A DNA stretch of 64,000 bases, taken from contig JAMWBK010000002.1 in assembly GCA_029953675.1 (NCBI GenBank), positions 1,674,001-1,738,000 on the forward strand. The letters are read 5' to 3'. Shown piece after piece: positions 6,820 through 50,679 of this stretch. The stretch is from Rhodosorus marinus CCMP1338 (lineage: Eukaryota; Plantae; Rhodophyta). The notes under the pieces were generated by a model. That model worked only from the letters and a program-made list of their open reading frames with translations. It ran no database searches and was not told where the DNA came from. Every line of letters starts with the position of its first letter. Position 1 is the stretch's first letter. The translations under genes and the position numbers were made by a program.

Positions 6820-8580
6820 CGCAGATTCGATATGCTGCCATGGGTGTACAACAGATCGACTTGGGTAAGAGATACGTGCGGAGGGTATGATTCGGGTGAG
6901 AAAAGTTCGTTGCAGGTTGCCGGAGATGCAATGGCTTGCGCCAACCCAGGACATGCTGGAGACGGTCGGATACCGCATTTGGCTTGAGCAAAAAGTTTTC
7001 CTCTTTTGAGTGCTGCTTTTCTACTCCGTGGGAGCCAGACGAGGAGAAGCACTGCAGTTGTTGTAGGAGAGCAGGTTCATTACCTAAGACATTTCGGGGT
7101 TTTTGATGTTTTCGTCTGTTATGGGAGCAATGCGCTCTCGGGGAGAACCCTCTCTGAAGCGACGTATTCGGGAGCATACTTCATATGGAGGCCAGCATTT
7201 ACACAAATTAACTCTGTCAACAATAGTAGAACTCGAGCAGCTTAATCTCTTAACGAGTCTGGAGCAGAAAGTCACCGACTTCAGTCGAGGTGGTTGCTTG
7301 CGGACGATCTGGATGGGTGTACGCGACGATAATGCACCCTCTTAAGTGCCTTGGGATCGGGTCTAGGAACCATCTTGCTTCAGCCTGTGCTGAGGACAAA
7401 ATCCGCCGCTTTTGCGATGAGCGTTGCCCGCGTCTACCGAGAGTTCAAGATTGTTATTCACAATAAATGTCTACACGCAAAGGATATGGAATCTCTTTGA
7501 ACAGGGAAAAAGAACAGTTCTACAGGCCTTCCCTGAGGGCCCAGGCTTGAGATGGGACCAAGCTGCCTGGGTCCTTTTCGGGCTTGAGGTTGTTTTAGAC
7601 TTGAAACCTGACTTGCTCTTTGGAGACCATTCGAGGATACAACGAATGCAAGTTCTCTAGGAGGACGAAGCGCAGCTTCAACTACGCTCATCAGTGAGAA
7701 TTACGAATTAGGTGATTAACAAGTACGTCGAGCGATGCTATATCAGAGGCAACATGTGGTCCCACTCAAAACACAGCCAAGTTCTCCTCAGTTCTTCTTC
7801 GTTGCATCTCTTAGCTAGTTTTATAGGCAAGCGACGATCATTAGGTTGACGCTCAGACATCGACTTTCGCGCTCTCACTTGGAGGTGTAAAACTTGAGTG
7901 TCTGCCCTAGCTGGTTTTAACTCTGGGACTCAAAACGCATGGAGTTTTGACCTAGCCATTGCGAGCTTTTAATCTGGGTCATGGTTAGCACCTGGCAATG
8001 CCTGCAATTCGCCGATAGTCGGCCGATGCCTCCTGGACATCAGCCCGGCAACAACAAATGCGCCAGCAACAGAAAGAAGCACTGATCCACACCCAAGTTG
8101 ATGAGTTGACGCAACTAATGTTTGTAGAGAAGCAAAGTTTTCCACGGATGGTGTACTCCATATTTCTCCAAAGTTTTCATTCCAATGACAGAGTAACCGT
8201 TCTCGCGCCGCTAAATTGTTACCTGAACTGTGGCGTGTGCGCAGTGAGCAAACATCATTGCTCCAGCGACTGGCAAGGCCAAGATGAAGTTGCTCTTGGG
8301 GGCCCGATTGCCGGAGAAAGAGTCGCATGTGGTCCGAATTCGCCCGTCGTCAGCCGAGGAGCGAGGTGCTTCTCAGCGAGCCTTCGTGAATCAGGACTCA
8401 GGTTTCCGGAAGGATAGCTCTACTTGACTAGTGCTTAGATCCTCGCCTTCCTAGAAGCGTTAGTTCGCGAGCTCTGTGCCTAGTTCACGCACGCTTTACC
8501 TAAATGACATAGTCCCCATGTTCCTTGTGACTGACCACAAAGGAAACGTCTCTCGTTTAGAATTGCGTTTTCCAGGCACG

Positions 8581-11312
8581 CTATCTCTGCCCGTTCCTGT
8601 TCGTCATGTTCGCAGCTAGCTGCTGTAAGTATGAGTACAAGTCAAGAGCTCCCAGAGCTTGTGGCGGCGGGGGGGGCAATCCCAACGCAGCCAAAGCAGC
8701 TAGATCCGTCGGCGGTATCGGACTCGATTGTCTCATGTTAGATTGGTTGCCGACCAGCGGAGGTGGCAGTGGAATCCCCTGAGGAACTGGGATTGGTGGC
8801 ATTGGTTGGTTAACAGGAACTCCGGGGATGACGCGGTTCGAAGGATTGTACTCCTGCGCTGAAAACGGGTCCAGAGCTTGGCTCGCGCCAGGCTCTAACC
8901 GTGGCTGGGAAGTTGACTGTCCCGCCAAAGCTAGGAGCAAAGACTGAATCCCACCCGGGGTTTGGGCCGAGTTGTGAGCCGGCGGCAGTTGGCCTTGGAG
9001 TGCCAGCGCTTGCATCATTTGCATTGCCGAGGCCTGAATTTCTGGTTGCTGGGGTGAGCACTCCGGTGGAACAGTGACAGGTTGCAGCTGCTGCTTCGGT
9101 AACTCGCTAGGAAACGCTGTTGGCTTGTACGCGTACACCGGCAGAGGTTCATATTTCTCGTCAGACAGCTCCCCATCTTCATCTGAATCCGTGTTCGCCG
9201 AAGCACGCGCTTTCTTCGAATTCTCCGCTTCATCTGGTTGATTCTCCTGGCTCACAAAGTGTCGACGACTCCAAATGAGATCATCGACATGCAAGATCGA
9301 GCTCAACGGTGTTGGGTGCTCCTCGGATTCTTGATCTGGCCGCCACGCCTGCAGCAGTTTACGTGCATTGTTGAGAGCCTTCCTAATGGTCAACGCCGCA
9401 AAACTGTTTCTAGCAATCTCGCTGTGGTCGCCCTGCGGATCCTCGACAGAAAACAACATTGGCTGGTACGTATCTAGCCCATACTTGTCAAGCTTCTTAT
9501 AGTAGCTTCCTCCCTCAAGTACAGCTACGCCCGTATAGCAATTGTTAAATACTTCCCCGTACAGCTCGAAGAAATCCATGAGCATGTCCCCCAACGCGTT
9601 TGCTGGTCTTGGGAAATTAAATTGGTGCATTTGCAGATGTGAAAGCGTCAAGAGAAACAACGCATAAGAGCCCAAACCCCCACGAAAAACCTGTGAAGAC
9701 GTGCAGAAAGGTGTAAAAATACAATTCTGAGCTGCCATGATACAGGTCTAACTACGGGGTAAACCACGTGTTCCAGCCTGCGCCTATACCTCGCCGAGAT
9801 TTCTTTGTTGAAGGAAGCACTTTATGACCATCAACAGTGGCTTCAATGAAGGGAAGTCCTCGATGTGTTTCCGGATGAACGCGACGTTGTTGGGGCCGCT
9901 TTCTTGATTGAAGGAAATATCACACTGCACATTTGTCTCTCGATCCACCAATTTCACTAGCGGAACTCTTGCCTTGTCAATAACCTGAAAACAAACACGT
10001 TAGATGCTGCAATCCGTTCTCAAAGGACGGGGCTGAGCGCGGCCACCAAAAATGAACATCAGCACACCTGAATCCTGCGTAAGAAGCCGGGTTTCTTCCG
10101 GAGTTCATCGGCAAGCGTGTTTAAATCCTCCGTGGATCCTTTCCCGGGGCTCTCGAACACGCAAACGTCAATGTCACTCGAGGGTAGGTAGAGGCCTGTT
10201 GCGAATGACCCGAAAACAACGACCTTTGCAGAAGGCCAGATGATCTTGACAACCTCCTCCACACGATCCAGCAATCTCAGACGCTTTTGATGCTCTGCAT
10301 CAGTAGGCGTGACGAAACGACAGAAGTCGAGAATTTCGTAATGTAGTGTGACCTTTCCGCGTTTGCACAAGACTTGAGTTAGTGAGAAAGCGTTTGCAAA
10401 AAGCAATCTGTTCGCAGCTAACCACAACGAGTTTGCTCCGTGCTCTCAGGGAGGTGAGATTCGCGTAGGCCTGTCTTTAGCCGCAAGGCTTACGCCCATC
10501 CGGTGCGCTTCGAATTGGAATAAATGAGGATCCTGAGCATCGCGCATCTTCGGCGAAGCTTATCCGACCTGCACTTAACGAGCAATTCGCCTCTCGTTCT
10601 TGACTTGGACGATTTAACCAACCATTTTGTTCGTGCTATGCTTCAACGCGAAAAGCAGCTCTTCACTTCGAACCCAAGGGGGAAGCACTCCCGCACTTGC
10701 TTCGTCAACCTGTTCGCCCTCCTCAAGCTTTGCAGTGACATTGTCAGCCTTCTCCTCATCATCAGACGACGAGAACTTTAGAAAATCCTAGCCCGGCGCA
10801 AGCACAAAGAGGCACGGTAAAAGGGCCATTCAGTGACGGTAGCGGTTAACAATTCCGAACTGTGGGGCATCGTATCCGGGCCTTGCGCGCTCAGTATCTC
10901 GGGGCTAGGAGAACTTCACTCGCGTGGGATACATAGGGCTCCGTTTACGTGTCCTCATTCTGACAGCCATCCTGATGCTAAGAGGCAGTGGCAACATACA
11001 TCAGAAGATGCTTTCATCTGCCTTTTGTTTCCTCGCTTGTCTCCATTGAAGAGGGAGAACACTTGATCCGACTTGCGTCGGACAGGAGTTTCGGATGCCA
11101 CTCCATCCAGCGGCTCGAGCTTAATTTCTTTCCAAGCTGAAAAGCAAATCATATTCATGACATCTGTGTTAGCATAGAGGTCTACGCCAGCTCGCAGAGT
11201 CTGCACAAGAGAACAGGCACCGGTTCATCACTGGACTACTACCTTCAGGAGCTCCAGGTTCCTCCTCAGGGTGCACTTTGTCCTCAGATGAATCGTCATC
11301 GGATAGATACAT
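8581..11312 (-). CDS. Non-canonical poly(A) polymerase of Trf4/Trf5/PAPD5 (TENT4) type, spliced
   Basis: FGSFATGLYLPSSDIDV nucleotidyltransferase motif, then ARVPLVK, CDISF, GGLGSY, a PAP-associated domain (SVEDP...RNSF) and a Pro/Gln-rich tail. The 5' exons are approximate. Confidence 0.85.
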
Positions 11313-11973
11313 CAGCAGCCTCCCTGCCGCCGCCCGCATAACGCAGCCGTTAGTCTTTTAAAACACCCATAACTGAACGACGATTTGCTTCCTCAGCCAG
11401 CACTAAACCTAGCCGGGTTTGTTCTTCTATCAATTGGGCACCTTGCCGGTCCTGTTCAACGTTGTCAAGATACATTTCTGCGCCCCATGCCCCGGCCGAA
11501 TTGTGCATGTCAGAAAGCTTGCATCCAGGCCTCTCGACTGAGCTCGCACCATATGTCCAGTTTTGCTGGAATAGGGTGTTGCGAGGGAAGGGGGTGGATG
11601 TGAGGCGTGCTCTGCTTCCGGTGAGCAAACTGTTTCGTGCAAAACAGTTTTCTGGTGACTGAGTAAGACCGCTTGTTCCGTTTAGATAGAGTTTCTAATT
11701 TTTCCGACGTCTTCGATTGTGATTGTTTCCGGTTTGTCACATGACAAGCGTCTGCTCAGCTTCCTATAGCGACGCCAGCGCCTGTTCGATCGGCTGGGTT
11801 GTTTGCCATATGCCCGGGGTGGGAGGGGGCCGCTGTGCTTACGGTCACACAGACTCAGAGGATTTTCTTCTCTCTATTGTATTCCGAGAGCGCAACCCCT
11901 GGCAGTTGACGAATGAGAATTATGTCCAAGAACATTTTCATTTTACACCAATACTACTATACACGGACGCCGA

Positions 11974-13949
11974 TCAGTCCACCACAAAGGAACTAGCAAC
12001 ACAACAAGTAGCAAAAGTGTACCTAGACCACAGCAACGTCTGATGCCCAGAAACACCATGATCTCTTTCAATCGTCTCTCCAGTTTTTGCTCTTTGCAAC
12101 TGTTCCTGCGAGATCCTTCAAGCCCGTTTCTTCACTTCATCTAAGCTAGACATTCTGCGAATGAACCTACAAACTTCTTCGTTTCCCTCATACAAGCTCA
12201 TACAATGATAAGCTAAATCGTGTTTCGCACAGAGTTCCTTTAGGATTCTTGAAGCCTCTGGGAGATTGTGGCGAGGAAGCGTTGGCCAGATGTGGTGCTC
12301 TACCTGTAGTACGCGCGATCAATCCAATGTAGAGTCTGAGACCAACTACCCAAATTCCGCTCGTACGTGATTGAGCTGCCTCTAAAACGAGTCAGTGGTA
12401 TACCTGATAGTTCAAGCCGCCAGTGAAAAAATCTGTGAACCAACTGGGAGTCACATTTCTTGTGGTTCTCAGCTGCAGCCGCACAAAGTCTGTCGTCTTC
12501 ATTTCGTCTTCAGTAAGTACCTCCATTGCGTTGTGGCCAACCGTGAAAACGATACCGATTAGCAGACCTCCGGTTGCCTGGGCACAACAATAGAACAAGA
12601 TCGCCAAAGCCCAACTCGGGATTTGCCATGCCAAGGTGAACATCAGCACTGAGGATAGTCACAAGCACAACCAAACACGAGGAGCGAGTTCAGTGAAACC
12701 TTCCATCTCTCAAGTGTGTTCAGGGTTGATGAGGGCTTACAGTGATGGAGAGCAAGTCCGATGATCTCGGCAGTTTTCATTGCTCGCCCACCAATGAAAA
12801 CGGTGCTGGGCTCCGTCATATAGATAATGCTTTGCGAGAGCCACGACATGCGAGCGAGACAAAGGAAAGGGAAATAAAAAAGCCACTGGTTTCGCACAAG
12901 AAAGAGTGGCAACCTATCCAGGTCCTCTCCCTCCAGCAGTTTTTCAGACCACAAGAGCATTGGGAGCGTGTGGATATCGGGATCCCCTCCGGCGCATGTT
13001 TCAGTCACGTTGGGGACAGCATGGTGATGGTTGTGCTTGTTCTTCCACCAAGACACGGAGAACCTACACACGAACCCCCCCCCCCACCCAAAAAAATTAG
13101 GCTCAAAAGCTCAGCGGCGTACTTTGACGATTTTGACTGTGGGGGGTCAAATTGCGTACCCTTGAAAAAGGTTACCGATCAAAAGCCCAACCATGTTGTT
13201 TAACGCGCGCTTCTTGAAGAGCTGGTGATGGCAGACATCGTGACATAGCCAACCACACTGTTGAAAGAAAAGACCGACCAAGAAGCTCGCCAGGAGAAGC
13301 AGGAAGGGATTGTTGGGGAAGCCCATGACCAGAGCAACCCCTGGGGTAAGGATGAGCAAGTTTCTCGCGACAAGCCAGACGTAGTAAAGCTTTGACGACT
13401 CGAAGGCGTGAAGGCGTTGCAGTTCAATCCTCATCCTTGCTATATCAGCGTCATATTCCTTAGCCTGCTGGGACCTACGGAACGGAAGAGGGCCAACTAT
13501 GAGCAAGCAGTTACAAGAACTGCCATTGTCACCGGAGATAATCAAATTGCTCGAATCGTACCGATCGTCCTTTAATTCGCCTACATAGAAATCCTTCAGC
13601 AGGTTCCAGGTGGACTTGGGATGAAACGCGTTGAAAACGCCCGTGGCATCGGTACCGGAAGCAGTGTATAGGATTTCTCCACCTGTGCAGGTGCCAACAA
13701 GGAGAAAACGTCTTTAGCGGAAATGTTATCTATGCATACGATGCTCCCCTTGGCGGCGAAGCTTTCACAAGTGCACAAGGGTTCTCCTACATACGTACCC
13801 GGATGCTTGCTTCCGAATTCGGTGACATCATATACACGTCCCCGAATCGCTACCCATGAATCTTCCTTCAAATCGTGCTTACTCAACTCCGCCAAGGTGA
13901 CTGGACGTGCGCGTCGCAGTCGCACGCCATCGTCATTCCCAATACACAT
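11974..13949 (-). CDS. Front-end (delta5/delta6-type) fatty acid desaturase with cytochrome b5 domain, spliced
   Basis: b5 motif VYDVTEFGSKHPG and His boxes HDVCH, HNHHH and QVEHH (the last spans an intron). The 3' end is approximate. Confidence 0.9.
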
Positions 13950-21163: not shown

Positions 21164-24100
21164 GTGAGCATGAAGAGGTTGGAGCATCCAGCGCCTCTGG
21201 GGTTCGTCATGATGATGTCAAAAGTGCTGCACGGTCAGAGCGCAGCCCGTTATGCGGGAAGGCGGTTTGGGTTTGGCGTTCGATGCTGTGCCACGGCTTC
21301 CAGCAGCAAACCAAAGACTGTTCTTCGCGGCAACTTAAACTGGGCGCCGCTTCATACGCATACGGACTACTCATTCCTAGATGGAGCGAGTCACGTACCT
21401 GATCTCGCCAGCCGCGCTGCAGAGATGGGAATACCGGCTCTAGCCATCACTGATCACGGTGCCATGCATGGAGCAATACAGCACATGAAGTCCTGCAAAC
21501 AACATGGTGTAAAGCCGATAATTGGAAACGAAATGTACGCTATCCCACCGGACATTGCTTACGCCGGACGAGTGGGAGTTTTCGCTTAACTTTGGCTTTA
21601 GCTGACGATTCCCGCTTCCAAATTTCTACTAGGTACATACTGAACGGGGATATTGAGGCTGACGGATACAAGGGACTTGTTCATCACTTGACAGTTATAG
21701 CAAGGAACTCGAAGGGCTATCAAAATCTCGTCAAGTTGACATCCATGAGCCACTTGCAAGGCATGAAATCCAGGAACAGATCAAAACGACCAGCAATCAA
21801 CAAGGAACTATTGCAACAGCATTCTGAGGGCTTGATCATTTTAAGCGGGTGTCTGGCAGGCGAGATACCGAAAGCATTGGTGGCAAGTAGGTTGTCCTGC
21901 AAGTAGCAATATTTTCTCATGACCGGATAGAGGGTTTCCACTAGAATCGAATCTGAAGAATTTCCGGCTTTGACCAAACCTAGATAGGTATAACGTCGCC
22001 CGAGAGGTTGCATTATGGTACCGTGACACTTTTGGTGCCGATTTCTACCTGGAAATGATGGATCATGGTTTACCTGCGCAGCAGGTTGCAAATGCCGGTA
22101 TCATTCAACTGAGTAAGGAACTTGGGATAAAAACGGTTGTCACGAACGACTCTCATTTCACAATGGCCTCCGATTGTTATGCCCACGATGTATTGCTTTG
22201 CATACAGGTAAGCCGAAACGGCACTACCGGTTGAAATGGAGTCTCATCGCGAGTATGCTGATATAGGATGTCATGCTTTCCATCTTTACAGACCGGAAAG
22301 CTAGTTAGCGATCCGAACAGAATGAAGTACACCGGTCAAGAGTATTTCAAGAGCGCTGATGAAATGATGGAGCTCTTCCAACATCCGTCCATAACGAGGA
22401 GCGACATTGCAGGTTCGCTGGAGAACACCCTTGAGGTGGGGTTTGATGCCTGACATATCCAGGGGCAACAGTTACATCCATTGGGCAATTCTTACTATCC
22501 CAGCTTATTCTCGCATAAACTAGGTCGCAAGCAAGGTCGAAGATTACAACATTCTAAGCGCACCACGAATCCCAACGTACCCTCTACCCGACGGTTTTGA
22601 CGGATCCATTGAGGTGCACCGAGCAGAGTCAGTTCTTTCTTTGATTACTGGTTGAGACTAACGAAGAGCGCTGCTCCTAAATGACACTCGACTATTGTCT
22701 ACAGGACTACTTTCGAGAAACCGCGAGGGCGGGCTTGAAGGAACAGATCGGTGATCAATATGAGGTTGCTCAGTACGAAGATAGGCTTGAGTACGAACTC
22801 CAGCTTTTGATTGACAAAGGGTTCGCAAGTTACTTTTTGATAGTTTGGGATTATATTCGATACGCTCGTGAAAACGGTATATCTGTCGGCCCTGGGCGTG
22901 GATCCGCGTGCGGGTCCCTCGTAGGTGAGACGCAGCTCTGTCCTTAACCCAGTTCTGATTGTACCCCAAGAACGCCTTTACGAGGCTTTTCCTTTAGTCT
23001 GGTTGGCTCCAAGCCGCCACGGCAGTCTTCGATCGCCGAGCTTTGTCCTGAACAGTTGTCTTCCACATCTTCACAGCCTACGGACTTAGAATAACTGAAA
23101 TCGATCCCGTCAAACACGATTTACTATTCGAGAGGTTCTTGAACCCCGAAAGAACCAGCTTGCCCGACATTGACACGGACTTCTCGATGGAGGGACGAGA
23201 GCGTGTCATACGATACGTCACTGAAAAATACGGAGAGGATCACGTTGCTCAAATCATCACTTTCAACCGTTTATCCTCGAAATCTGTTTTAAGGGTATAA
23301 GAAATCGGCTGGAACGATTGCCAACCAGTTGCTTGATGAAAGTGCACTCACGAAATAGCTTTCATGCGCATTTTAATTCCTGAAGGACTGCGCAAGGGTG
23401 ACCGGGATTCCATACGCTGAAGCAGACAAAGTGTCAAAACTCGTGCCTGTAGCAAGAGGAAAGGCAACCAAATTAGAAGCAATGATTTCAGACGGATCTC
23501 CATCGCCTGAGTTCAAGAATCTGTAAGAACAATTAAGACACAACGGAGAAGCTCTTGCAGTCACTGATCAATATTTCGCCTTGTCTACACCTCGATTGTG
23601 TCAGCTATGAGACAGAACCAAAAATGAGAGATCTTGTAGATGTTTCTATGATATTGGAGGGTACAAACCGGAACAGCGGTGTACACGCAGCTGGAGTCGT
23701 TATCGGGGCAGAACCGCTGAATACGATAGTCCCGTTGGCTAGAGGAAAGAACAATGAAGTGGTCACGCAGTATGCAATGGAGGAACTTGAAGACGTGGGA
23801 CTGCTGAAGATGGATTTTCTCGGTTTGAGAAACCTCAGTATCATCGATAGCACGAGGGAATATGTGGCGAAGAAGTGAGATATTCCTACACGCACTACGC
23901 CTGGGACGTCGACTGAGTGAGCCACTCACTCTGGGTCGTCCGTTATGTTGTATTGCGTAGGAATGGTGAACAACTACCAATTCTGCAGGACCTCTCCTTC
24001 AGTGACAAAGGAACGTATGACTTACTTTCCACTGGCAAAGTCGATGGCGTCTTCCAGCTAGACGCCTCAGGTGGAATGCAGGAGGTACGCGATGAGCCGT

Positions 24101-26952
24101 TAGAGGAATGGCGTGGCTCTCCTGGTGGGAATGTAGCTTGCGCTACTCAACTAACTGCTTAACTTCCTGGCTTGCAGATTGTGAAGAAGTTGGGACCGAA
24201 CTCGATTTCAGATATTTCGTCTATTCTTGCACTATATAGACCAGGACCGTTGGACGCTGGACTTGTGGACACTTTTATTGATAGAAAACATGGGAGGGAG
24301 CCAGTCCAGTTTGAACATCCACTCCTCGAATCCATACTTCACGAGACGTACGGAGTTTTAGTATATCAAGTGCGTCTGTTTTGCATTTGCTAGTTCGCCT
24401 GAAATCGTAACAGCGTGCCTGACTAGAAGTTCGTCTTTTTTTTTCCTCGCAGGAGCAAATTATGCAAGTTGCCAGGGATCTAGCTGGCTACAGTCTCGGA
24501 CAAGCTGATATTCTACGACGAGCTATGGGGAAGAAGAAAACAGATGTTATGGAACACGAGCGTGGCAGATTTGTCTCCGGCGCCATCAAGAACAATATTG
24601 ATAGGAAGCTTGCTGAAAAGTTATTTGAAAGCATGCTCAAATTTGCGGAGTATTGCTTCAATAAGAGTCACTCCACAGCCTACGCGTGAGCCCGTTAGCC
24701 TTTTGCTCGGTACTCTGAATCGTATTCAGTTTAAGCACTGACAAGAATTTTGCTTTATGATGTAGGTACCTTACATTCCAAACAGCGTGGCTAAAGACCC
24801 ACTACCCCGTAGAATTCATGGCTTCTGTTCTCCGGCTGAACTCGGACAACATGACAAAACTTCCGAGATACATTGATGACGCTGCCTCGCAAGGTGTTGT
24901 TGTTCTTGCTCCCTCTGTAAATACGAGCGACGTAATGTTTGCCCCTGTGTATACGCTGCCATCTGGTTGCAAGGCACCGAGCTCAAGGTAGGGACGGAAT
25001 GTTGCGGATTAGCGTTGTAGAGCATCAGAATTAAGTTCAGTTCTCTTTCCGTAGGAACGGGTATGTGGGCTTTGGACTTGGCGCTGTCAAGGGAATCGGA
25101 GAAGTCGCTGCGCAAGCAATCACCGACGAAAGAATCAGGGGCGGGGATTTCAAGTCCATCTTCGACTTCTGTGCGAGGTACGACCGTTTAGAAGGGACTT
25201 TGGTGTGGTTTCGTATTGCGGAAGCTCATCCACCCTAGCGGAACGATTAGTATTGACGAGAATTCTACTTCCTCTTCGGTAGGCTTCCTTCAAAAGTAGC
25301 GGGGAAGCGGGTCCTTGAAAACCTTGTTCAATGTGGAGCATTCGATGATCTCCATGAGAACCGTAAAGCGGTTTTCAACTCAATTCCCCAAATTTTGGAC
25401 TGGCGGAAGAAGTTAGACGCAAAACGAAAGCGGGCTGCCGCCAAGCTGAAGGAAGGAGGCCTTTCTGAGGTTGTGCATGACATAGACTCTGACGAAATTG
25501 TGAACAAGATAAGAGGGTCCTGGCTGGAGGCGGAATCCGACTATAGCGTGATGGAGAGGTACTTTATAGAAAAGCAGCTAGTTGGCTTCCTGACCTCGGG
25601 TGACCTTCACAAGGAAGTGAGTCACTGCTGAATCGCGAAATCGTTTCAACATGAGACTGTGTCGCGACGGCTGATTTTGCTCTTTCCTCCGTATTCCTAG
25701 TACGAGCGTTGGGTTCGGTTTGCTTTGCCGAACACGTTGGATGCAGCCAGAGGAGGCCCTCAATCCCCAGCGGAGGAGTCGGAGGTGCTCGATGATCGGC
25801 CTCAGGAAGCAGGTATCTGGCGATGCGAATTCTAATTCAGTTTAATCATAGGCAGAGAAATTAATGCTTTTCTTCGACTTCCATGATGGCGTTTGACAAC
25901 AGAAGCCAAACGACAGTCAAGCGACCAGTTCTACTCTAAACCTTTAAAGGATGGCGAATCGGATCTCTTTTTTGGGGTTGTTACTGACACGAAGAAACTG
26001 TTCACTAAGAACGGCGCGAACCCAATGATGAAGTTCACATTGGAAGACGCCACTGGGGAAATTCCGTGCGTGGCGTTCACAAGGACCTATGCACGGTAAG
26101 AACGTGATTGACATGAGGTTGCTTCTCTGAACCTTTTGCGTTGGATCGCTGTACGTTCTGCTGCCCAGCTTACCCTTTTCGCCGTGTCAACGCAAACACA
26201 AAAACAAACTACAGGGTGAAGGACTATCTTGAAGTAGGAAACCGTGTGGCCGTCTACGGCAAGGTGAGGAGGTACTCTGGTGCAGAGATCCATGTCGAAG
26301 GCGCACATATGATGGAAGATTACATTGTTGTCTTGGCTTACTTGGAGAACCAGGGCTCTGCTTCCAAGGTACGATCAAGAGTGTTACAGTCAACCGATTG
26401 GGTTGTATCAGTTTGCTAAGCCAACTGGGTTCCTTCCCTTCTGCGGAAACAGCCAACAATCAGGGAGAACTTGACTGGTGCTTTGGAACATCTTGCAACC
26501 CAGCAAGATGGTGGTAACACGATGATGAGTTTGAGGATTGCGGTACGTCTTGTTTTTGGTTAATGCTCTTGAAAAGTTGCTCATTCGTCGGCTTTCCCGG
26601 GATACGCTGATGAATTCGATGGATCCGGCCTCGCTTCGTCACTCATTGGAAGCTCTTCCTTTCTTTTGAACAGACCATTGGATCGCGATCGGATCCGTTG
26701 ATGCCCGAAAATATTGTAAACAGCAGATGGAAGCACATTGTAAGGGTAAGGGACAAAGAATATGTCCGCAGGGTTTTCATGCATTACGACGTCCCCGCGT
26801 TGATATGCCCACTGCGTGACTATGAGCGACTGATGAGGGACCGAGACATCAAAAAGTTCGAAGAACAAGTATTCTACGGAGATGAAGAGGAGCCAGTGCG
26901 TGAGGACGACTACGCACAAACGCTTGAGCGCAAAAACGTCGGCAGCGGCTAA
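21164..26952 (+). CDS. dnaE: DNA polymerase III alpha subunit (family C), nuclear-encoded, 20 exons, ~1327 aa, with transit-peptide-like N-terminus
   Basis: Hand-built exons: 21164-21534, 21633-21886, 21984-22207, 22292-22435, 22524-22613, 22705-22924, 23077-23294, 23386-23522, 23605-23874, 23961-24084, 24178-24369, 24453-24685, 24766-24987, 25055-25177, 25283-25616, 25701-25812, 25903-26095, 26215-26368, 26453-26542, 26674-26952. All introns are GT-AG and all phases are consistent. Motifs: [74 protein letters not shown] and an OB fold. Confidence 0.95.
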
Positions 26953-27986: not shown

Positions 27987-30149
27987 ATGGAAACGGAGAT
28001 AAACAGCATGGATGTTCTTCCTGCACATTTCCTGGACATGCTTTCGGGAATCTGGGGAGAGACAGGGAAAGAGAAGGCTGAGCGGGAGGAGTTCCTTCGA
28101 GAGACAGGCGACAGTGTCCTCCAGATTCTAGCTAGTAGGGTAAATTCGCAAAAACTGCTCGCGGAACAATTGCGAAGAGAACGTGACGAGTTGGTGCAAG
28201 ACATTGAGGTCCTTTGCTCTGACGTTGGGGGGACGCCCATGGATGCATCGATTTTAGAGGGTTTAGCAAGCAGCGCGCAGGTGGCGAAGCTTAAGCGAGA
28301 GCGGGGTAGTCTGCTGGATGAGCAGAAACGGATGAAGTCAGATGCGGCAAAAATACGGGACTCGATTGTGTCCGTTTGGGTGGACACACTTGGTGAACCA
28401 TATGAGAATCTGTCCATCCTAACATGCAGCAAGTCCTGCTTTCTGGAAAAGGTTCTCCACGCAGAGGAGCTACAAGTTAGTTCAATTGCAGCTAAGAGAA
28501 AGGTCAAGGTTGAAGCTCTACTTACCAAGATATCAGATTTGTTGAAGACGCTCGGTAGAGAACCTCGCAACTCCCAACATGCAGTTGATCAGGCGTTGAT
28601 TCTTGGCAGTTCGTCAAGGTGCGTGCACAATCAACTCTTTTGTGGTTTGGATTCGAAGATCAAAGCGCTTCCGTAAAATTTTCGCTGGTGCTTCTCAGAT
28701 CGGAAGAATGGATACGGAATATGCTGATGTGCCATCTGTGTTAATAACCCCTACTAGACTGGATCGTACTTGGATGGAGACTGTAGAGGCAAGACTTAAA
28801 GAGGTTGAAGAGGAAGAGAACAGACGTCGAGTAGAACTAGCAGAGTTGGTGAAAATCGCTTTCGATCTGTATAAATCGCTTGATTTACCAAGCGAGCAGT
28901 CAGCAAAGTTCATGGAGGCAAATTCCAATGTGTCCGATGATTCCATGAACGCCTGGCGGTTTGAGATTGCTCGTCTTCAGGAAGTACGAAACCAGAGGAT
29001 AGAGGTAAGCGCTTCCTTTTTGGAGACATAAACCGAGCATTCGGATTTCGGGCAACTAAACAGCCCTCCTTTCGCGTTGCGATAGAACTCCGTGAGGAGC
29101 CGATTGAGTCTATTGGAATCTTTGTGGAATGAGTTGGGAGTTCTTGAAGAACAGAGGGGCTCATATACGTTTGTGCCCGGCAACATCGAAGCTCAGGACG
29201 AGGTTGCTAGAAGACTTCGTGAGGAGCTCACTCGGCTGGAGACAGGACAATCCTTGGTTGAACCTCTGAGAGAACTTTTAAGTAGGCGAAGCGATCTGCG
29301 AATAAAGCGACTCGCTCTTGACTTAGAAGCGGAAAATCCGAAGCGGCTATTGGAGCGAAAGCCGTCTGAGGCCGGAAAGCTCTTGAGAGAAGAGAAACTG
29401 CGGCGTGAAATTTCGGCACTGCCTCGAATTGACGCAATGGCTCTGAAAGGGTAGGACGAGCACGCATCATGACACTATTTTGCATACCGTGGTGCTTCTA
29501 TTCCGAAAGGTTGTTCACTTCAAATTCTTCCTGGCGGGGTATGCGTGTGCCTTTTGTTCACTGTTTTTGAAGATTGGCAGAGTACAAGAACAAAACCGGT
29601 GTTGACTTTGTGTGGGATAGAAATGTTGCGGAGACGCTTGTCCGCCAAGAGCAGCACGCAGATGAACTTGTTCGCGAGGAGAAACGTCTAAAGAGGTTAG
29701 TACGGGGCGAGGGGTTCTCGAAATAGCCAGTGGACAGAAATCCGCTATTCCAGAGCCGGGCAGTACTGGTCCCAATCTGCAACACTTACGTTCTCTTTAT
29801 TTCGTTCTGCGTAAGGATCACGACGCGTTCAAACAATCGTCATGGATTGAGAACCACTAGTGGGATGGAGAACGGCAATCGTTCCAAGAACATTGTCTCA
29901 ATAAGCTTGAAGACGCCAACATCGATTCGGCGCGGAACGTTCAGAGCGGCAACAGAATCAAGCGCGCGCAAGCGAACTTCCCCCAGGCGTAGTGGGAGAA
30001 AGGACAGCATCGAAGAGAGCAGCAGTAAATCAACGGCCAAACGCTTAAGTATTTCCGGTGAGAATCTGCTCAAGGAGTTTTCGAAGCAGGAGAACGCACC
30101 CAACCGACTCCCGAGTGAGTCCTCTTCGGAGGTCAAAGATAGCAGATAA
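27987..30149 (+). CDS. MAP65/Ase1/PRC1 microtubule cross-linker, spliced
   Basis: Long coiled coils with repeated LW..LG units, signature ENPKRLLERK..GKLLREEK.RR..LP, and a Ser/Arg-rich basic tail. Confidence 0.8.
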
Positions 30150-35457: not shown

Positions 35458-36569
35458 TTTGTTGCTCTTAATTGTTCGTTCTTTCCTGTCGCGTCCCCGA
35501 CAAGGCTCTCGTTAAAAGCTTGATGTACGTGAGATTCGGTCGAAGATGGAGGTTCTCTCAGAGCTACAGAGATCGATGGAGACGCATGCACCCGTTCTCT
35601 TCTACCCGAGCAACCCCACTGATCACACAGCGGCTAGCAATTTATATACCAACTATAGTGCTAGATATAGGCACGCAGAGATCTAAACTAAGACATTATC
35701 TCTAGAATAGTACAAGATACCTAGATCACGTCATATATATGAACGTGTGAACCAATGAACGTGTTTCAAACAGTCTTGGTAGTTTCCCCGTTGGGATCTG
35801 CGTTCGCCTGACACAAGACGCTACGAAATGGCTGGGCGAACTTCCCATCGTTATTGGACAGTTAGCTAACATGATGTAGTGTGTATTTTCCTATATCGTT
35901 GAATTTGAGAAATATTTCAGGTCTTTCTAAAATTGGAATAAGCCGCCCAGGCCCGCGCCAACCAAAAGTGTCTTTGCGTAAAAGTTTCTTGATATTGTGA
36001 TGGTTGAATTTTGTTCATAAAAAAGAAAATAGTACGAATATGGAAACAGTGTGGCTTTGTCAGCGAAAAAGAGGATTTTTGTTTGCTGAGCGGACAGGGG
36101 TTTCGTTTTACTGTGAACAACGCGGCTTGGGGAACGCACGCCCGTCTTTAGCATCGGATGAATGAACCTGTTGCGCGGTTAAACGCATTTCCACTGGGAA
36201 AGCGGGTTCTAGATTGCTTCAAACTAACCGGAACAGCCGAAGCCTGCTATAGGCAGGGTTTTTGTTTTGTAGCTGTTCGTTACTATTTGTGGAAAGCAGA
36301 ACCGGGAGGTCTTAGTCATGTAGAAAATACGACGGTTTGAAGAAGTCGTAACGTCCGTAGAGTCTTTTGGTTCCCTTCGGACCGTTCACGACTTCTTTTG
36401 GTCACGTCAAGAGCCTCTGTGTCAGATTTCTGAACTGGGAGCCCCCCTGAACGTCCTTCCCTTACCTCATCCTGGAATCAGCCGACAAACCTCTAAACGT
36501 CTATTGAGTACTTTTTTTGTGGATACTGTGATAGTCGAGTTTGTTTAGAAAAAGAAATCAGGAAGAATA

Positions 36570-36830
36570 TGGAAGCAGTGTTGGCTAAAGAACGAGGAGA
36601 GACGGTCAGGGCGTTCGCGGAACACCTCCCGACACCAACTAGAACCAACAAAGTCCATAAACCCAAAACACAAAATGGTCAGAGCGACCTGGCGGTGAGC
36701 TTAAGCCGACGCGCGAATATCCGGGGAAGATAGAGCCTCAGCACATTTCACTTCTTTGTGATGGCGCATAGCGCCAGCGGCAAATCCACGGCGCTCTCCC
36801 GCAGCCGGCAAATATAATAGCTAGCCCGCG
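36570..36830 (-). mobile_element. Degenerate family B RLE fragment
   Basis: Nucleotide similarity to 32150-32410 (GGAGAGACGGTCAGGGCGTTC.CGGAACA; CGGCAAATCCACGGCGCTCTCCCGCAG). Confidence 0.7.
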
Positions 36831-37199
36831 GATTAGCCCCCAACAAATTCGTTCAAATTCATTCTTCCTATAAATGCGCAAGTGGCGACAGTCGAGTTTC
36901 GAGAGCTGCACGTGTATGATAGCGGGGTTTTGGGGGGTGTTTTCCTTAGAGCGCTATGCAGGGGGAAAGCCGCGAGCGCCCCGACCGGATCTCCTAATTA
37001 GTCTGGGGTACTGCTGTGGGCAGCTACCAAGCAAAGTTTACGGTTTCGTTAACCTGGGGTACGACACGCGTTTGAGAAGGATCGAGCCAATCGCGAGATA
37101 GGTATTTTCTAGATGAGACCCCTGAACGGGGCTGCTGGGTATGTTTAGTGCGTACTAAGTATGTTAGTGGTTGACCATCCTGTGGAATACTTGGAGCTC

Positions 37200-38575
37200 C
37201 TACCCCGTTTCAGTGTCGCTCTTTGGGGTTTTGCAAACAAGTCCTGTGCACAGCGTTGGGTATTCCGGTACACCTGATTTCACATATAGATTTTGTTGCC
37301 ACCCACGCACTGCTGGTATGTCATCCTGACGCGATACCGTTGATCACCAGCGCCATTAGGAGGGGAGTCTTCCGCTCAGGTGTGTTTGGTTCCTTCGCGA
37401 GACTCCGCCAAGATCACCAGGTAACAATTCACACCGGAGTCGAGCCAGAAGCGCGGAACCTGATCGGATACAATGAGAGGCTCACACTGCAGACACATGA
37501 AGTTAGCCAACGCATACTTGAACGAGCCATTGAACAGATGGAGAGAGTTAAGCGCATGATATCCCAGCGGTCCACGCCGTTCACTACCTCGGCTTCCGTC
37601 CGTGCGCGCCTGGATGCTCGCCTGGAGTATCTGCGCTCGCGCCTTGAAACGCAGGAACCCGCAGCCCACCGCATGGCCTCCACTGTTACGGAAATAGAGA
37701 GTGAGATCCCCCTGCGGACAGGAGCCGATAACGAAAGTGCACCTATTCCCGAAGTCGCAGCGGGCAATGCACAAAGTGAATTACCGCCAGATCTTGGGCC
37801 CTCTGAAACTTCGGGTACAGGCAGCTCAGAGGCCCAGCCGAGCAGTATGGAAGTGATTCATGATGGAGATACGCCCACCACCGACGAGACACGATCTCTG
37901 AAGAAGTCGAGACAGGAGGATACCCCATCTGCGCCCGAAAACGCCCATTCATGAGCGTCCCAGGTTCGAGAAGCGGCTGAGAGACACCGCGTTGATCACC
38001 ACGGATCCGGAGGCTTGGGAACAACGGCTTCACATGTTCCTAGCCGCACAGACGGACGACGGCCGCCGCTGGTGGATGGTCACACATAGCCCTGTAATGA
38101 CCCGTAAATACGTACCTAATGCCCAGGTCAAGCATTGGAACCTACTACTCCACCGTGCTCTAGGTCTCGCACCGAACACTGCAGCGGTTCCGCCCTTAAG
38201 CCTCTTTATCATGGCACTACCACGCCTGCGCTAGGGATCTGTGATCTTCAGATCGGCGAACAGATAGAAATGCACCGGCTTCTCGACGAAGCTAGGGAGC
38301 ACCATCCCCATAAATGGAACCCGTCTGACGCGAGCGACGAATCACTCCTCGCACTGATCAATAGACAACCGCCAAAAACGGGTCCTGGGCCAAGTGGCCT
38401 TCGCGCCGAGCATCTACAGCCAGTGACTCCAACGAATAGGCCTCTGCTGGTACGGTTCCTGCTCTGTCTCGTGCAGAACCCTGAGGTTACGTTAGTCTGG
38501 TTGTTTTATTAGTGCGCTACGGTAGGTAGCAGCCGAATGAAGGCTACGGGGTTACGTTAGTCTGGGGTTTCGTTA
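37200..38575 (+). mobile_element. Family A CRE-like element, N-terminal region and start of RT, internally deleted
   Basis: CHPDAIP..GVFRSGVFGSF domain, KTGPGPSGLRAEHL (RT domain 0), then the tail motif. Confidence 0.75.
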
Positions 38576-39270
38576 GTCTGGGGTGCCGGTCCAATAACAA
38601 AAACACTCTCTCGAGAGTGCCACCGACAAGGGTTTGAGGTACTTACTGGGGATCCAACGCTGGAAGATATTGACCTGGCGCGCATCCGATCGGCAGACGG
38701 AACAGGATGTGGCGTATGGCGGCGAGACTGTCCTAGTACAGGGCCGAGGTAGTTGAACAGAGGTGAGATGATCTGGAGCATCCGGATGCTGTTGGGGCTA
38801 CCACTACCAGGACTAGCTCGGTCGTACACGTGCACGATTTGTGAACAAGCTCACGATGTACAAGGAATTCAACGTCTGCATCACTGCCGAACGTCGTCAG
38901 GCATGCGAACAAAGCGACATGATGAACTAGAAATGGAGCTGAGCCGATGGATGCACTTGTGGGATTTTACGGACCTACAAGTGGAGCCGCGAGGGTTCTT
39001 TTCCTGGTCGGGTCTTCGACCAGATATTGTAGCAAGGCACCCGACGAGCGGGCATGTGTACGTGGTGGACGTAACGGTGACGTCGCCGCTTCAACGTCAT
39101 CAACTTAGGCAAACGGGCTGGAGAAACGGATACGCAGCGGAGAAAGGGGAGCAAAGCAAAGTGGCACACTACCAGGAGGTAATATGCGTTGAAAGCAGGG
39201 AGGTGATACTCGTACGATTCATTGTTGAGACGTACGAACGGCTGGGCCAGGGGTTACGTCACTCTGCAGC
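38576..39270 (+). mobile_element. Family A zinc finger plus RLE fragment
   Basis: CTICEQAH..LHHCRT..RTKRHDEL, LRPDIVA..YVVDVTVTSP..AEKGEQSKVAHY..RFIVETY. Confidence 0.85.
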
Positions 39271-39386
39271 CTGGGGTATCCAATGAAATAGTCTGGAGTC
39301 TGGGGTATCCAATGAAATAGTCTGGAGTCTGGGGTATCCAATGAAATAGTCTGGAGTCTGGGGTATCCAATGAAATAGTCTAGAGT
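39271..39386. repeat. 4 x 29-bp tandem repeat CTGGGGTATCCAATGAAATAGTCTGGAGT
   Basis: Read directly. Three copies are perfect and the fourth has one substitution. Confidence 0.9.
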
Positions 39387-39399
39387 CTGGGAACGTTAG

Positions 39400-40250
39400 T
39401 CTGGAATCTGGACTGGTATAAGAAGTCTGTGGTTATTCGAGAGTGATGACGAACGTTGGAGAACCCCCCCCGCGTGGGGAAGGAATCTTGAGCGATGAGA
39501 GTGATCCTCTGGGAGACAATTGCTGTCGCGCTGATCAGCTTGAGGAGGGGGAAATCGAAGAAAACTCGGTGCAGTATGTACATGAGTTTACAAATGGTGA
39601 TAAGCCAGCCCATACAATGGATACTGCATCAACGCTTACAGAAGAGAACTTTCTACAGGGCTCCATGCAGAAGTTCTCGAAGTACACCGCCCTTTACGAA
39701 GATGTTGGGGTGGCAGTCGCAGAGATACAGCGTTTTTTCGTTAACGTCGACCGGTTGTACACCTTGGCAGGCACAACGGCTGACCTGAAGGGGATTAATG
39801 ATCATCTGGAGCGTTTGGGTGCAAACCCCACGCTGTGGAACCCCTCGGAAGTGCCGCAAGGAGGTCACCCCCGCCGTGGACAGAACCAGAAGATACCCTA
39901 TCAACTTGGGAGTCAATCCAAGGATCAGTCAACAGAGCAGTCTGGGGGACAACACAACCACGACATCTTCATCCCCTTCTGTCTGGAAACATTTGGGCAG
40001 ATGGGACAACAAGCGAGTGAGTTCCTCAAGGAAGCGACTATACACCTAGATCAGCGGGCAACGCAAGTAAGTGAGGCTCGGGCGATCTTGAACCGCACTC
40101 TTTGGAAAGGAAACGCTATCCTCGCCACCCAAGCTCGTCGTGTCGACAAAGCAGACTATGACATCGTCCCTATCTTAGAACGTAGCCACACAACCCATTA
40201 GGGGTTTCTTTGCTGACCAATAGGATCCTTATTCCTTCTTAATGGGCTCC
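39400..40250 (+). mobile_element. Chimeric or internally deleted CRE-like element (family A 5' end fused to an RLE C-terminus)
   Basis: The 5' part is near-identical to 43460-43800. The 3' part reads FIPFCLETFGQMG..LNRTLWKGNA. Confidence 0.65.
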
Positions 40251-40299
40251 AATAGGGAGCTCTTCAGTAAAGTGTACGCGGTTACACCCAACATCGACG

Positions 40300-40935
40300 G
40301 GACTGTGGCAGCGAAGGCACAACGAAATCTGTACGGAGCTGGCGCGATGGGTGAATCGCTGGAATTTCATCGACATTAAGCAAGAACCGGAGGTGTACTT
40401 CGAGAACTACAGACTAAGACCGGATATCATTGCTACTCATTCCAGGACGCTCCAACGGTATGCGCTAGATGTGACGGTTACATCGCCACTGCAGGAGAAA
40501 TACGTGAATCGGAGTGGGTCAGAGAATGGATATGGAGCGAAACGAGCGGAGATGTGGAAAATGGCACATTACAAAGAGGCGATGTCAGTGGAGAAGCCAG
40601 ACGACAAGCTCATTACCATTGCGATCGAGAGCTTTGGGGGTACAGAACAAATGGCCCAAGAATTTCTACGAGATAGGTGCAAGCATTTGTTGCACCGGAG
40701 CTTAGAACTGAGCGATGTTCGGGCTCAGATCAACCGCAAATTATGGCAGGGGAACGCGGAGATAGCGATAGGCGATCTGCGAGTGGACCAGTTGGCGAAT
40801 CCACTGGTCCCTGTTTTTTGGTTTGACCGTAGCATGAGACCCCGGTAGCGGGGTTAGCGTAAGCTTTTCCGTAGATAGTAGTAGAACTAGTGATAAGCTG
40901 CAGTAGGCAGCTGCCCAGTAAAGTTTACGGTTACG
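40300..40935 (+). mobile_element. RLE C-terminal copy of the 45.5-50.2 kb element
   Basis: Near-identical to 49600-50235, including the tail. Confidence 0.85.
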
Positions 40936-40949
40936 ATAGTCTGTAAATC

Positions 40950-41790
40950 AGCATCCATCGAAGGCCGTACAGCGCACATCGGTTGCGGCATACTCGGCGT
41001 ACTTTAACAGATGCCTTATCCAAGAGGGCACCATTTCGGGTTCCGAAAATTTTGACCGCTTCGACGAAGGACTCAAACCCGACTTCAAAAAATACATTTA
41101 TATACAAGATGTGACAACCTTCGAAGAGGCTCAAGCTCTCGCGTTAAAGATTGAAGGAGCCGAGGCAGCCAGCTACAGCTCGGGGCCGGACACGGGAGCA
41201 TCGAAACAGCGGAAACCGGAACCAAGGGAAACTACCTTCGAGAGAAGAGGAACCCGTTCCGGCAGAAAGTATCTACCTACTATCCAGGAGCTAAAACGTC
41301 GCAACTATGCCAACATTATCTGCGACTACTGTGGAAAAGGGGCCATACGAATTGCATTTGCTGGAGTAATCCAGGAAGGGATCCGACTGTTGCGAAGTCG
41401 GCACCTCCATCAACCCAGCGGTTAGAAGAAGAGCAGCAGTAGGGGACGCCGCTACTGTTGCTGAAAAAGGCGTCCCTATTCCTCTCCACGGGGATATGAC
41501 AGTCCATTGGTTGGTCAACGGCAAGGAAACCCCCCCCTGCTGATCGATACAGGTAGCAGCCATTCTGCCATAAGGGGATTGCCAGAATCGGGGCCGTTGT
41601 TACCTTCCCGACATAGGCGATTGGACACAGCGTCACCGGGCGCATCGATTGACATCCTGGGTGAGGCCGATGTGACCCTGCAACTAGGTGGTCATCACTT
41701 CGATTGGCAGCCCTATGTAGTTGAAGACGCCGCGAGCTCCGGATATTTAGGAAGAGATTTCCTACAAAAAAATATAACGCGCAGCTGAAT
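40950..41790 (+). mobile_element. Ty3/Gypsy-like gag-protease remnant
   Basis: Zinc-knuckle-like CDYCGKG(GH) with a frameshift, and the aspartic protease motif LLIDTGSSHSAI..GRDFL. Confidence 0.65.
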
Positions 41791-41799
41791 TTACTCAAC

Positions 41800-42270
41800 C
41801 ATGCCCTGATCATACAATGATGAACGCCGTGTAGCCGACCTGGTGATCACCTGTGACGACAGCCGCCGTACCACATACGTTGATCTTGCTGTTCCTAACC
41901 CTCAAGCTAGTCGTTATCTCCCCGCTGCGGGGGAGCGCCGTGGATCTGCCGCCGCCAGCATGAGACGCCGCAAAGAGATCAAATACGCGGGGGCTTTGTC
42001 TTCCCCTGGTGTTCGTGCTTCGGCACTAGCACATCGCTTGGTACCCCTGATCATTGAGTGCTTTGGGTTCATGGACTCTGTTGGTTCTCGCTGGCTTCGG
42101 GAGTTGTTCCGCGAACGCCCTGACCGTCTTCAATCGTTGTTTACCCGCTTAAGTTTCCTGCTGTGGCGCATGAATGCCGCTTTGATGTTGGAGGCGCGAG
42201 TACTTCGCGGCGCTTAGTCTTTTTTTCCCCTCGGGGTTTTTTTTTCAGCCTCCGATTAAACCATTCGCAA
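41800..42270 (+). mobile_element. Family B RLE 3' fragment
   Basis: The translation is identical to the C-terminal 124 aa of 54196-54978. Tail CAGCCTCCGATTAAACCATTCG. Confidence 0.9.
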
Positions 42271-43305
42271 TGGGGTTGACGGGAAAACAGTGTCTGCGGA
42301 ATGGCAACCATTAGCAGACTGTGCAAGAGGCACTGAGACGGATCAGACGAGTTCCGCAGGATATGACGGTCCCATTCAAAAAACGCTCTCTCGAGAGTGC
42401 CATCGTCACGCCTTCGAGACACTCACGGAGGATGCAACGGTGGAGGACGTAGACAGGCCATGAATCCGGTGGGCGGCAGGACGGGTTGTGGCGTATGGCT
42501 AAGAGACTGCCCTAACGTGGGTCCGCGGAAATTGAGTTGGGCTGAGATGATCTGGAGCATGAGGATGCTTCTGGGGCTACCCCTACCTGGCCTAGGCCGG
42601 TCATGCAGTTGCACAGTCTGCGAGCAACCACACGATGTGCGTGGGATCCAGCGGCTGCACCACTGCAGGACGTCATCGGGGATGCGAACAAAGAGGCACG
42701 ATGAGCTGAAAGTCGAACTGAGTCGATGGCTACACCTATGGAATTTCACAGAGATAGTAGTAGAGCCTCAGGGGTTCTTTGCTGGGTCCGGAATTCGACC
42801 CGATATTGTAGCACGGCACCCAACGAGTGGTGGCGTGTACGTGGTCGACGTGATGGTAACATCGCCACTTCAAAGGAATCAGTTGAGGCATACGAGCTGG
42901 AGGTGCGGATATGCTGCGAAACAAGCAGAACAAGCGAAGGCGTTGCATTATAAGGAAGTGCTGAGGGTGGAAAACCGAGACCTGGTTTCTGTGCCCTTCA
43001 TTTTGGAGACTTTTGGTCGAATAGGCGAGGCAAGCCTTGAATTTCTTCCCATAGGGACGGCGCATCTGCATGATCGTGACTCCCATCTGTCGTCTGTGAG
43101 GGGTCAATTAAATCGGATTCTGGGGCAGCATAATGCAGCGCTAGTTGAGCATGCGATCGAGAAAGATCGCGCGGATAGAACAATATTTCCCTTGAGTAGA
43201 ACTTAGGTGGGACCCCTGGACAGGGGGTGTAAGTGAGTTTGGGGCGAACATATAGTAGTGGTATTGCGCTGCGGTAGGTAGCTGCCGAATAAAGGCTACG
43301 GGGTG
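42271..43305 (+). mobile_element. Family A-related zinc finger plus RLE 3' region with tail
   Basis: CTVCEQPH..HHC..RHDEL, IRPDIVA..YVVDV, VPFILETFG, stop at 43206 and the tail hairpin motif. Confidence 0.85.
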
Positions 43306-43439
43306 AAGCAGTTAGGTGTGCCTCTCTCGAGAGGGATTGTTGTATGGAACCTTGCTTTACCTCAGGCTGGTCCGGGGTTAGTAAAGCTTACGGTTACGTT
43401 AGTCTGACGTTAGTCTGGAGTAAAGCTTACGGTTACGTT

Positions 43440-50245: not shown

Positions 50246-50635
50246 GGGGTGCCGGTCCACTAACAAAAACACTCTCTCGAGAGTGCCACCGACAAGCGTT
50301 TGAGGTACTTACTGGGGATCTAACGTTGGGAGATATTGACCGGGCCCGCATCCGATCGGCAGCCGGAACAGGATGTGGCGTATGGCGGCGAGACTGTCCT
50401 AGTACACGCCGAGGCAGTTGAACAGAGGTGAGATGATCTGGAGCATCCGGATGCTGTTGGGGCTACCACTACCAGGACTAGCTCGGTCGTAAACGTGCAC
50501 GATTTGTGAACAAGCTCACGATGTACGAGGAATTCAACGTCTGCATCACTGCCGAACGTCGTCAGGCATGCGAACAAAGCGACATGACGAACTGAAAATG
50601 GAGCTGAGCCGATGAATGCACCTGTGGAATTTTAC
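50246..50635 (+). mobile_element. Family A zinc-finger fragment with the same 5' junction as the 38576 copy
   Basis: GTCTGGGGTGCCGGTCCA.TAACAAAAACACTCTCTCGAGAGTGCC occurs in both. Confidence 0.8.
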
Positions 50636-50679
50636 GGGGGATAAGTTAGGATAAGTGTGTTTCACGATCATGAAGATGA

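Follow-up and report, generated by a model that had tools for sequence, protein, structure and literature searches.

A 64,000-nucleotide stretch of the genome of the red alga Rhodosorus marinus CCMP1338 (contig JAMWBK010000002.1, positions 1,674,001 to 1,738,000; hereafter the window) contains dnaE, a gene for a DnaE-type alpha subunit of DNA polymerase III (Pol III). The gene runs on the forward strand from an ATG at window position 21170 to a TAA ending at 26952, and comprises 20 exons separated by 19 GT-AG introns of 67-152 nt (median 90 nt) with correct phases. Its spliced coding sequence of 3975 nt is translated into 1325 amino acids (aa) that match R. marinus KAJ8907721.1 at every residue (100% identity). 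This protein, encoded on a 3.48-Mb contig, is a 'hypothetical protein NDN08_007827' in GenBank, and its sequence bears the name 'DNA polymerase III subunit alpha' in UniRef. The preliminary description of this DNA had assigned the DnaE to positions 21340-24685, a span that lies inside the gene as now modelled but covers only about 60% of it. All five peptides quoted there are found in the spliced product: KPIIGNEMY/ILNGDIE (aa 115-130, 21512-21657) across intron 1, SHLQG at 21748-21762, and three others at 23253-23282, 23455-23517 and 24633-24683.

Exon 1 (21170-21534, aa 1-122) encodes a 57-aa N-terminal extension (21170-21340) followed by the start of the PHP domain (LHTHTDYS). The catalytic motif PDIDTDF (23163-23183, with Asp463 and Asp465) is in exon 7 (23077-23294), and LLKMDFLGL (23801-23827), which carries the third catalytic aspartate, Asp621, is in exon 9 (23605-23874). 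Exon 12 (24453-24685, aa 747-824) contains an unbroken KFAEY/CFNKSHS, in which the split-intein site of cyanobacterial DnaE falls between 24653 and 24654; the preliminary description had given exactly the same limits for this exon, and an independent transcript block (24450-24687) agrees with them. Exon 15 (25283-25616) includes the region (aa ~975-1012) that matches the beta-clamp-binding GQxNLFD of cyanobacteria, with the motif lost. The OB-fold domain begins in exon 17 (25903-26095; gene model and Pfam), and exon 20 (26674-26952) encodes a poorly conserved C-terminal domain and an acidic tail of ~43 aa, absent from cyanobacteria, before the TAA stop. Exons 2 (21633-21886), 3 (21984-22207), 4 (22292-22435), 5 (22524-22613), 6 (22705-22924), 8 (23386-23522), 10 (23961-24084), 11 (24178-24369), 13 (24766-24987), 14 (25055-25177) and 16 (25701-25812) are defined by both the gene model and transcript alignment, and exons 18 (26215-26368) and 19 (26453-26542) by the gene model.

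The protein is a complete C-family polymerase of the DnaE type, with the full set of five Pfam domains: PHP (PF02811, 5.6e-47), the DNA_pol3_alpha palm (PF07733, 3.5e-95), the fingers (PF17657, 2.4e-55), the helix-hairpin-helix domain HHH_6 (PF14579, 5.4e-23) and, following it, an OB fold (PF01336, 2e-10) at aa 1112-1180. In an alignment with cyanobacterial DnaE (alignment A1), the palm aspartates D463, D465 and D621 are intact, PDIDTDF and KMDFLGL are conserved, and nine positions of the PHP domain (H62, H64, D71, H96, E121, H140, C195, D262 and H264), which we take to be metal ligands from the known enzymes of Thermus and Mycobacterium, are invariant. Chance resemblance is no concern, because the protein scores 1000-1050 bits against cyanobacterial DnaE and 779 bits against the structure of Thermus aquaticus Pol III alpha (PDB 2hpi). 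The 57-aa extension is missing from every cyanobacterial DnaE aligned; it has ten lysines and arginines versus one acidic residue, and 19 of its 57 residues are serine, threonine, alanine or glycine. The C-terminal region, which is the tau-binding domain in Pol III alpha, aligns loosely with the cyanobacterial C-terminus.

The gene is nuclear, transcribed, spliced and under strong purifying selection. Its neighbours are eukaryotic (sulfotransferases, a Cid1-type poly(A) polymerase, MAP65/ASE1 and retroelements), and its G+C content agrees with that of the surrounding sequence. Rhodosorus transcripts of the MMETSP collection encode a collinear 1327-aa protein with 96% identity, and the alignment blocks of a JGI transcript (L085) match exons 1-16, exon 12 included. 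Between L085 and the gene in the window, dS is 0.247 and dN is 0.020, giving a dN/dS of 0.081. Some transcripts are incompletely spliced: L085 keeps intron 16 (25813-25902) and ends early (P0001, 1094 aa), and one MMETSP open reading frame (ORF; P0002, 974 aa) begins within intron 5 (22614-22704) and would encode a product devoid of the PHP domain.

Once Rhodosorus is set aside, the top 118 matches to the protein consist entirely of cyanobacterial DnaE, with identities uniformly at 52-54%, and include Gloeobacter, Cyanobium, Prochlorococcus, Nodosilinea, Leptolyngbya and Chroococcidiopsis. Unsplit cyanobacterial DnaE (Gloeobacter kilaueensis, Cyanobium, Prochlorococcus, Nodosilinea) shares with the Rhodosorus protein this level of identity, the five domains, the catalytic and PHP residues, a similar core length and the junction at the intein site. 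Unlike these genes, that of Rhodosorus is nuclear, with 19 introns and the 57-aa leader. Its product has one insert of 13 aa at aa 885-897 and another of ~32 aa ahead of the OB fold; the C-terminal domain has diverged and ends in the acidic tail, and QxxLF is missing.

Pol III alpha has been reported from eukaryotes before. According to a preprint by Antoine, Burki, Archibald, Pelletier and Delmont (bioRxiv 10.64898/2026.05.23.727376, 25 May 2026), red algae (most often) and streptophytes have a nuclear, transit-peptide-bearing DNApol-III alpha, Pyrenomonadales cryptophytes have one in the nucleomorph, transit peptides are predicted for the Archaeplastida clade, and in a maximum-likelihood (ML) tree of 567 sequences the eukaryotic proteins are united in a single clade that is sister to Cyanophyceae. 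When 1.8 billion cluster representatives were searched, the matches included red-algal homologues from Porphyridium purpureum, Cyanidium caldarium and Cyanidiococcus yangmingshanensis, several further red-type sequences, and streptophyte homologues from Spirogloea muscicola and Mesostigma viride. A 1333-aa DnaE was also found at positions 8502-12503 of a 17-kb contig (L082) with 26-31% G+C, on which intron-poor housekeeping genes of eukaryotic type (NMT, DEAD helicase, eIF2-gamma, TFIIA, ribosomal S3, proteasome) lie close together; this contig looks like a cryptophyte nucleomorph, in line with the result for Teleaulax in the preprint. The Rhodosorus gene is of the same kind, with which both this list of homologues and the trees described below agree; it shares nuclear encoding with the Archaeplastida clade, as well as grouping with other algal DnaE within Cyanobacteria sensu lato. 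Three red-type homologues from Logan assemblies (P0248, P0251 and P0256) are ~2000 aa long, with ~1000 extra C-terminal residues that have no Pfam match. A Pfam scan found no OB fold in these three or in the Porphyridium and Cyanidium homologues, whereas Rhodosorus keeps its OB fold.

In neighbour-joining (NJ) trees, with bootstraps on a set of 77 taxa under three distance corrections, the algal sequences take a basal position among the photosynthetic cyanobacteria, and in no tree do they join another phylum. Under all three schemes, every bootstrap replicate (100%) separates the algal sequences and Cyanophyceae, together with Melainabacteria-like sequences, from other phyla. The clade of algal sequences and Cyanophyceae has 56-96% support and the red-type group 41-60%, whereas Rhodosorus falls within a subset of Cyanophyceae in 0-30% of replicates. 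The cyanobacterial appearance of the protein, remarked upon in the preliminary description, is thus borne out by both its best matches and its placement, and in no NJ tree does it branch outside Cyanobacteria with good support.

The intein-site junction in exon 12 consists of Tyr813 (24651-24653) and Cys814 (TGC, 24654-24656), and the nearest introns are at 24370-24452 and 24686-24765. No intein remnant is left, since the alignment with unsplit cyanobacterial DnaE runs through the junction without a gap; the gene is a single one, with neither an intein N-half after FAEY nor a C-terminal extein on a separate gene. The preliminary description was therefore right that the reading frame is contiguous across this site within one exon, free of intein remnant and intron, and also that many cyanobacteria split dnaE at AEY/CFN: the DnaE-N frames of Nostoc, Scytonema and others continue from KFAEY into CLSYDTEILTVEYG, and a genome scan with a query of extein plus intein detected the intein in the genomes of at least 424 species, among which only Nostoc-like genomes were kept. 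A protein search with the same type of query gave fragments of less than 200 aa, unfit for a tree. In split DnaE (Nostoc, Synechocystis and relatives) the extein is homologous to the Rhodosorus protein, and FAEY and CFNKSHS flank the insertion point in both; unlike split DnaE, Rhodosorus has one gene without intein halves and needs no protein splicing.

All of the 118 best cyanobacterial matches are unsplit, 113 of them with the same junction sequence as Rhodosorus, and Y-C-F-N-K-S-H is ungapped in each of the 14 eukaryote-type sequences. The cysteine at position +1 is also present in Gloeobacter and in a sequence from the non-photosynthetic Gastranaerophilaceae, both unsplit, so it is not diagnostic of split-intein DnaE; in other phyla this position is mostly glycine (84 of 150 representatives). 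The split DnaE-N sequences in the NJ tree are all within crown Cyanophyceae, interleaved with unsplit ones, and not beside the algal clade. Gupta and Mathews (PMC2823733) placed split DnaE in a derived cyanobacterial subgroup and found it absent from Gloeobacter-type and marine picocyanobacterial clades. Because the best matches are unsplit, the cysteine extends beyond photosynthetic cyanobacteria, and the split forms occur only in the crown group, contiguity at this site is common and is the expected ancestral state. The word 'fused', which the preliminary description applied to the junction, is inappropriate, as nothing suggests that the gene was ever split. The cysteine was considered as a possible intein footprint and rejected on account of its presence in unsplit cyanobacteria and their non-photosynthetic relative.

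Four crown cyanobacteria have unsplit DnaE of 1181-1187 aa (P0055, P0031, P0044 and P0110, from Chroococcidiopsis, Trichocoleus, Kastovskya and Kamptonema, respectively) that branch beside split-intein Nostocales in the NJ tree, so the intein is patchier than the 2010 statement that all members of Clade B are split would imply. Four non-cyanobacterial DnaE sequences (P0307, P0312, P0319 and P0326) contain another intein, full-length and inserted three residues further downstream between GFNK and a cysteine; inteins have therefore entered this short conserved stretch on two or more occasions.

In cyanobacteria and Melainabacteria-like sequences, the beta-clamp-binding motif GQxNLFD is located 162-167 residues after FNKSH. 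QxxLF is found nowhere in the 1325 residues of Rhodosorus DnaE, and is missing at the corresponding position in all red-type homologues examined and in Spirogloea, whereas Mesostigma retains it as QAKLF and the nucleomorph DnaE has the related sequence NQPLFF. Red algae reportedly lack the beta and tau/gamma subunits (preprint), whereas cryptophytes are reported to retain beta, a distribution with which the pattern of the motif agrees. These sequences suggest that red-algal DnaE works without the clamp. Loss of the clamp motif with retention of the polymerase and PHP residues, together with the state of the intein site, is all that the present analysis adds to the preprint, whose main text mentions neither Rhodosorus nor inteins and is silent on the clamp-binding motif and the PHP residues.

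This nuclear dnaE very probably descends from the replicative polymerase gene of the cyanobacterium that founded the plastid, an intein-free donor, and has since gained 19 introns and a putative targeting extension and been kept by selection. Endosymbiotic gene transfer is well supported, because the nearest relatives are cyanobacterial and the protein groups with other algal homologues at the cyanobacterial base, never with other phyla. Of the two origins put forward in the preliminary description, the one that best accounts for the data is transfer from a plastid ancestor without the intein; horizontal gene transfer (HGT) from a free-living cyanobacterium is disfavoured by the distribution of the gene and by the low share of bootstrap replicates (0-30%) in which Rhodosorus is nested in a subset of crown cyanobacteria. 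As dnaE moved from the plastid ancestor to the nucleus, it would have acquired its 19 spliceosomal introns and N-terminal extension, and the basic leader, rich in hydroxylated residues and alanine, may take the protein into the plastid. There DnaE may synthesise plastid DNA by extending primers together with the cyanobacterium-derived helicase DnaB (plastid-encoded) and primase DnaG, alongside the polymerase POP, with its PHP domain possibly providing its own 3'-5' proofreading; the missing internal QxxLF suggests that it would act without the beta sliding clamp. FAEY/CFN would be contiguous because the donor never carried the split intein, so that no protein trans-splicing is needed, and the intein would have entered the already conserved cysteine codon later, inside crown cyanobacteria.

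Contamination of the assembly by bacteria, or a decaying and functionless pseudogene, has next to no chance of accounting for the locus. Bacterial-type genes in algal assemblies are frequently contaminants, and the 'hypothetical' label in GenBank would suit a contaminant or relic, but both readings are ruled out by the introns with correct phases, the eukaryotic genes on both flanks and a G+C content equal to the surroundings, the spliced transcripts from related strains, a dN/dS of 0.08, and an intact reading frame with all catalytic residues present. Acquisition of dnaE by Rhodosorus or an early red alga from a free-living, intein-free cyanobacterium, independently of plastid origin, is improbable. 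The NJ trees, which do not yield a single eukaryotic clade, are compatible with separate red and green acquisitions, and one distance correction places Rhodosorus within a subset of Cyanophyceae in 30% of replicates. In contrast, the occurrence of the gene in Stylonematophyceae, Porphyridiophyceae, Cyanidiophyceae, two streptophytes and a nucleomorph derived from a red alga tracks endosymbiotic history, and the protein is no closer to one cyanobacterial group than to another (52-54% identity throughout), none standing out as a close donor. Rhodosorus also lacks a 19-aa insert, present in Chroococcidiopsis (alignment A1), that is typical of DnaE in the clade of Nostocales, Oscillatoriales and Chroococcales (PMC2823733), and the published ML tree (LG+R10) contains one eukaryotic clade.

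It is very improbable that the donor gene contained an intein here that was later deleted precisely, or whose two halves were rejoined, in the algal lineage. The cysteine needed by an intein at position +1 is present, and the interleaving of intein presence and absence among crown cyanobacteria in the NJ tree implies that gains or losses occur; however, that cysteine is shared by the unsplit Gloeobacter and Gastranaerophilaceae sequences, and none of the 14 eukaryote-type sequences has a gap, extra residue or decay at the junction. The intein halves are parts of separate genes, the seamless in-frame rejoining of which after transfer would be a very improbable event. Inteins are excised from the protein and stay encoded in the RNA, which means that reverse transcription of a spliced message could not have deleted one.

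Several points weigh against descent from the plastid founder followed by service as a plastid polymerase. Monophyly of all eukaryote sequences was not recovered in the NJ trees of 77 taxa (0-13%), and monophyly of Cyanophyceae without the eukaryotes ranges from 16 to 98% with the distance correction; all of the trees are NJ trees, with weak deep nodes and long eukaryotic branches, and their sampling does not include Gloeomargarita, the closest known relative of plastids. The leader could also direct the protein to mitochondria or to both organelles. To our knowledge, no biochemical activity has been described for any eukaryotic DnaE. According to the preprint, red algae lack beta and tau/gamma, which makes a true replicase role uncertain; POP may replicate the plastid DNA, with DnaE active in repair or in filling gaps.

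In red algae and plants, the polymerase accepted as replicating plastid DNA is POP (PMC6523293; PMC4166229). Like DnaE it is a nuclear-encoded polymerase for organelle DNA, but it belongs to family A and is not cyanobacterial in origin, whereas DnaE belongs to the unrelated family C. In the previously accepted account, POP took the place of Pol III, which disappeared at the origin of plastids (PMC6523293); surveys of organelle replication enzymes in red algae record DnaB and DnaG of cyanobacterial descent, with Pol III not among them (PMC4166229). The remarkable feature is the very presence of Pol III alpha in a eukaryotic nuclear genome: the Rhodosorus gene, complete, selected and expressed, is a clear counter-example to Pol III loss. 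With a complete Pol III alpha and the retained cyanobacterial DnaB and DnaG, the question of what replicates red-algal plastid DNA becomes experimentally addressable. The core phenomenon, survival of Pol III alpha in eukaryotes, is already known from the 2026 preprint, which makes the point across Archaeplastida, so the Rhodosorus locus is mainly a clean and fully resolved example, with the small addition concerning the clamp motif. Because QxxLF is lost in all red-type sequences, kept in Mesostigma and represented by NQPLFF in the nucleomorph copy, red-algal DnaE might be a stand-alone plastid polymerase that proofreads its own products through the PHP domain and operates beside plastid DnaB and DnaG without clamp or clamp loader. 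This proposal is tentative, with the balance somewhat against it; if true, plastids would have a second polymerase in addition to POP, a C-family replicase that has been pared down naturally.

For the history of the intein, Rhodosorus dnaE is only a modest outside data point. The preliminary description expected the gene to bear on when the intein was acquired, but it adds little, as the unsplit state is common and already published. The gene fits an origin of the split DnaE intein inside crown cyanobacteria after the plastid lineage diverged; an origin within the crown group had already been inferred from Gloeobacter and picocyanobacteria.

Elsewhere in the window, tRNA and Rfam searches produced no match, and the genes around dnaE are ordinary eukaryotic ones. 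A fragment of a MAP65/ASE1-like gene (27987-28676, forward strand) starts ~1 kb downstream of dnaE, and an ORF with a Cid1-family poly(A) polymerase-associated domain (8581-9738, reverse strand) is located upstream. Two convergent sulfotransferase-like ORFs of 337 aa each (688-1701, forward strand, and 2647-3660, reverse strand) share 38% identity over 297 residues and are therefore old paralogues. Repeated retroelement copies are clustered at 36500-54500, where segments of 90-300 nt recur with 89-97% identity at spacings of ~3.8, 6.6, 9.3 and 11.7 kb. This cluster includes a 600-aa ORF (48179-49981) with a weak match to reverse transcriptase, and its G+C content reaches 0.595 at 46-48 kb.

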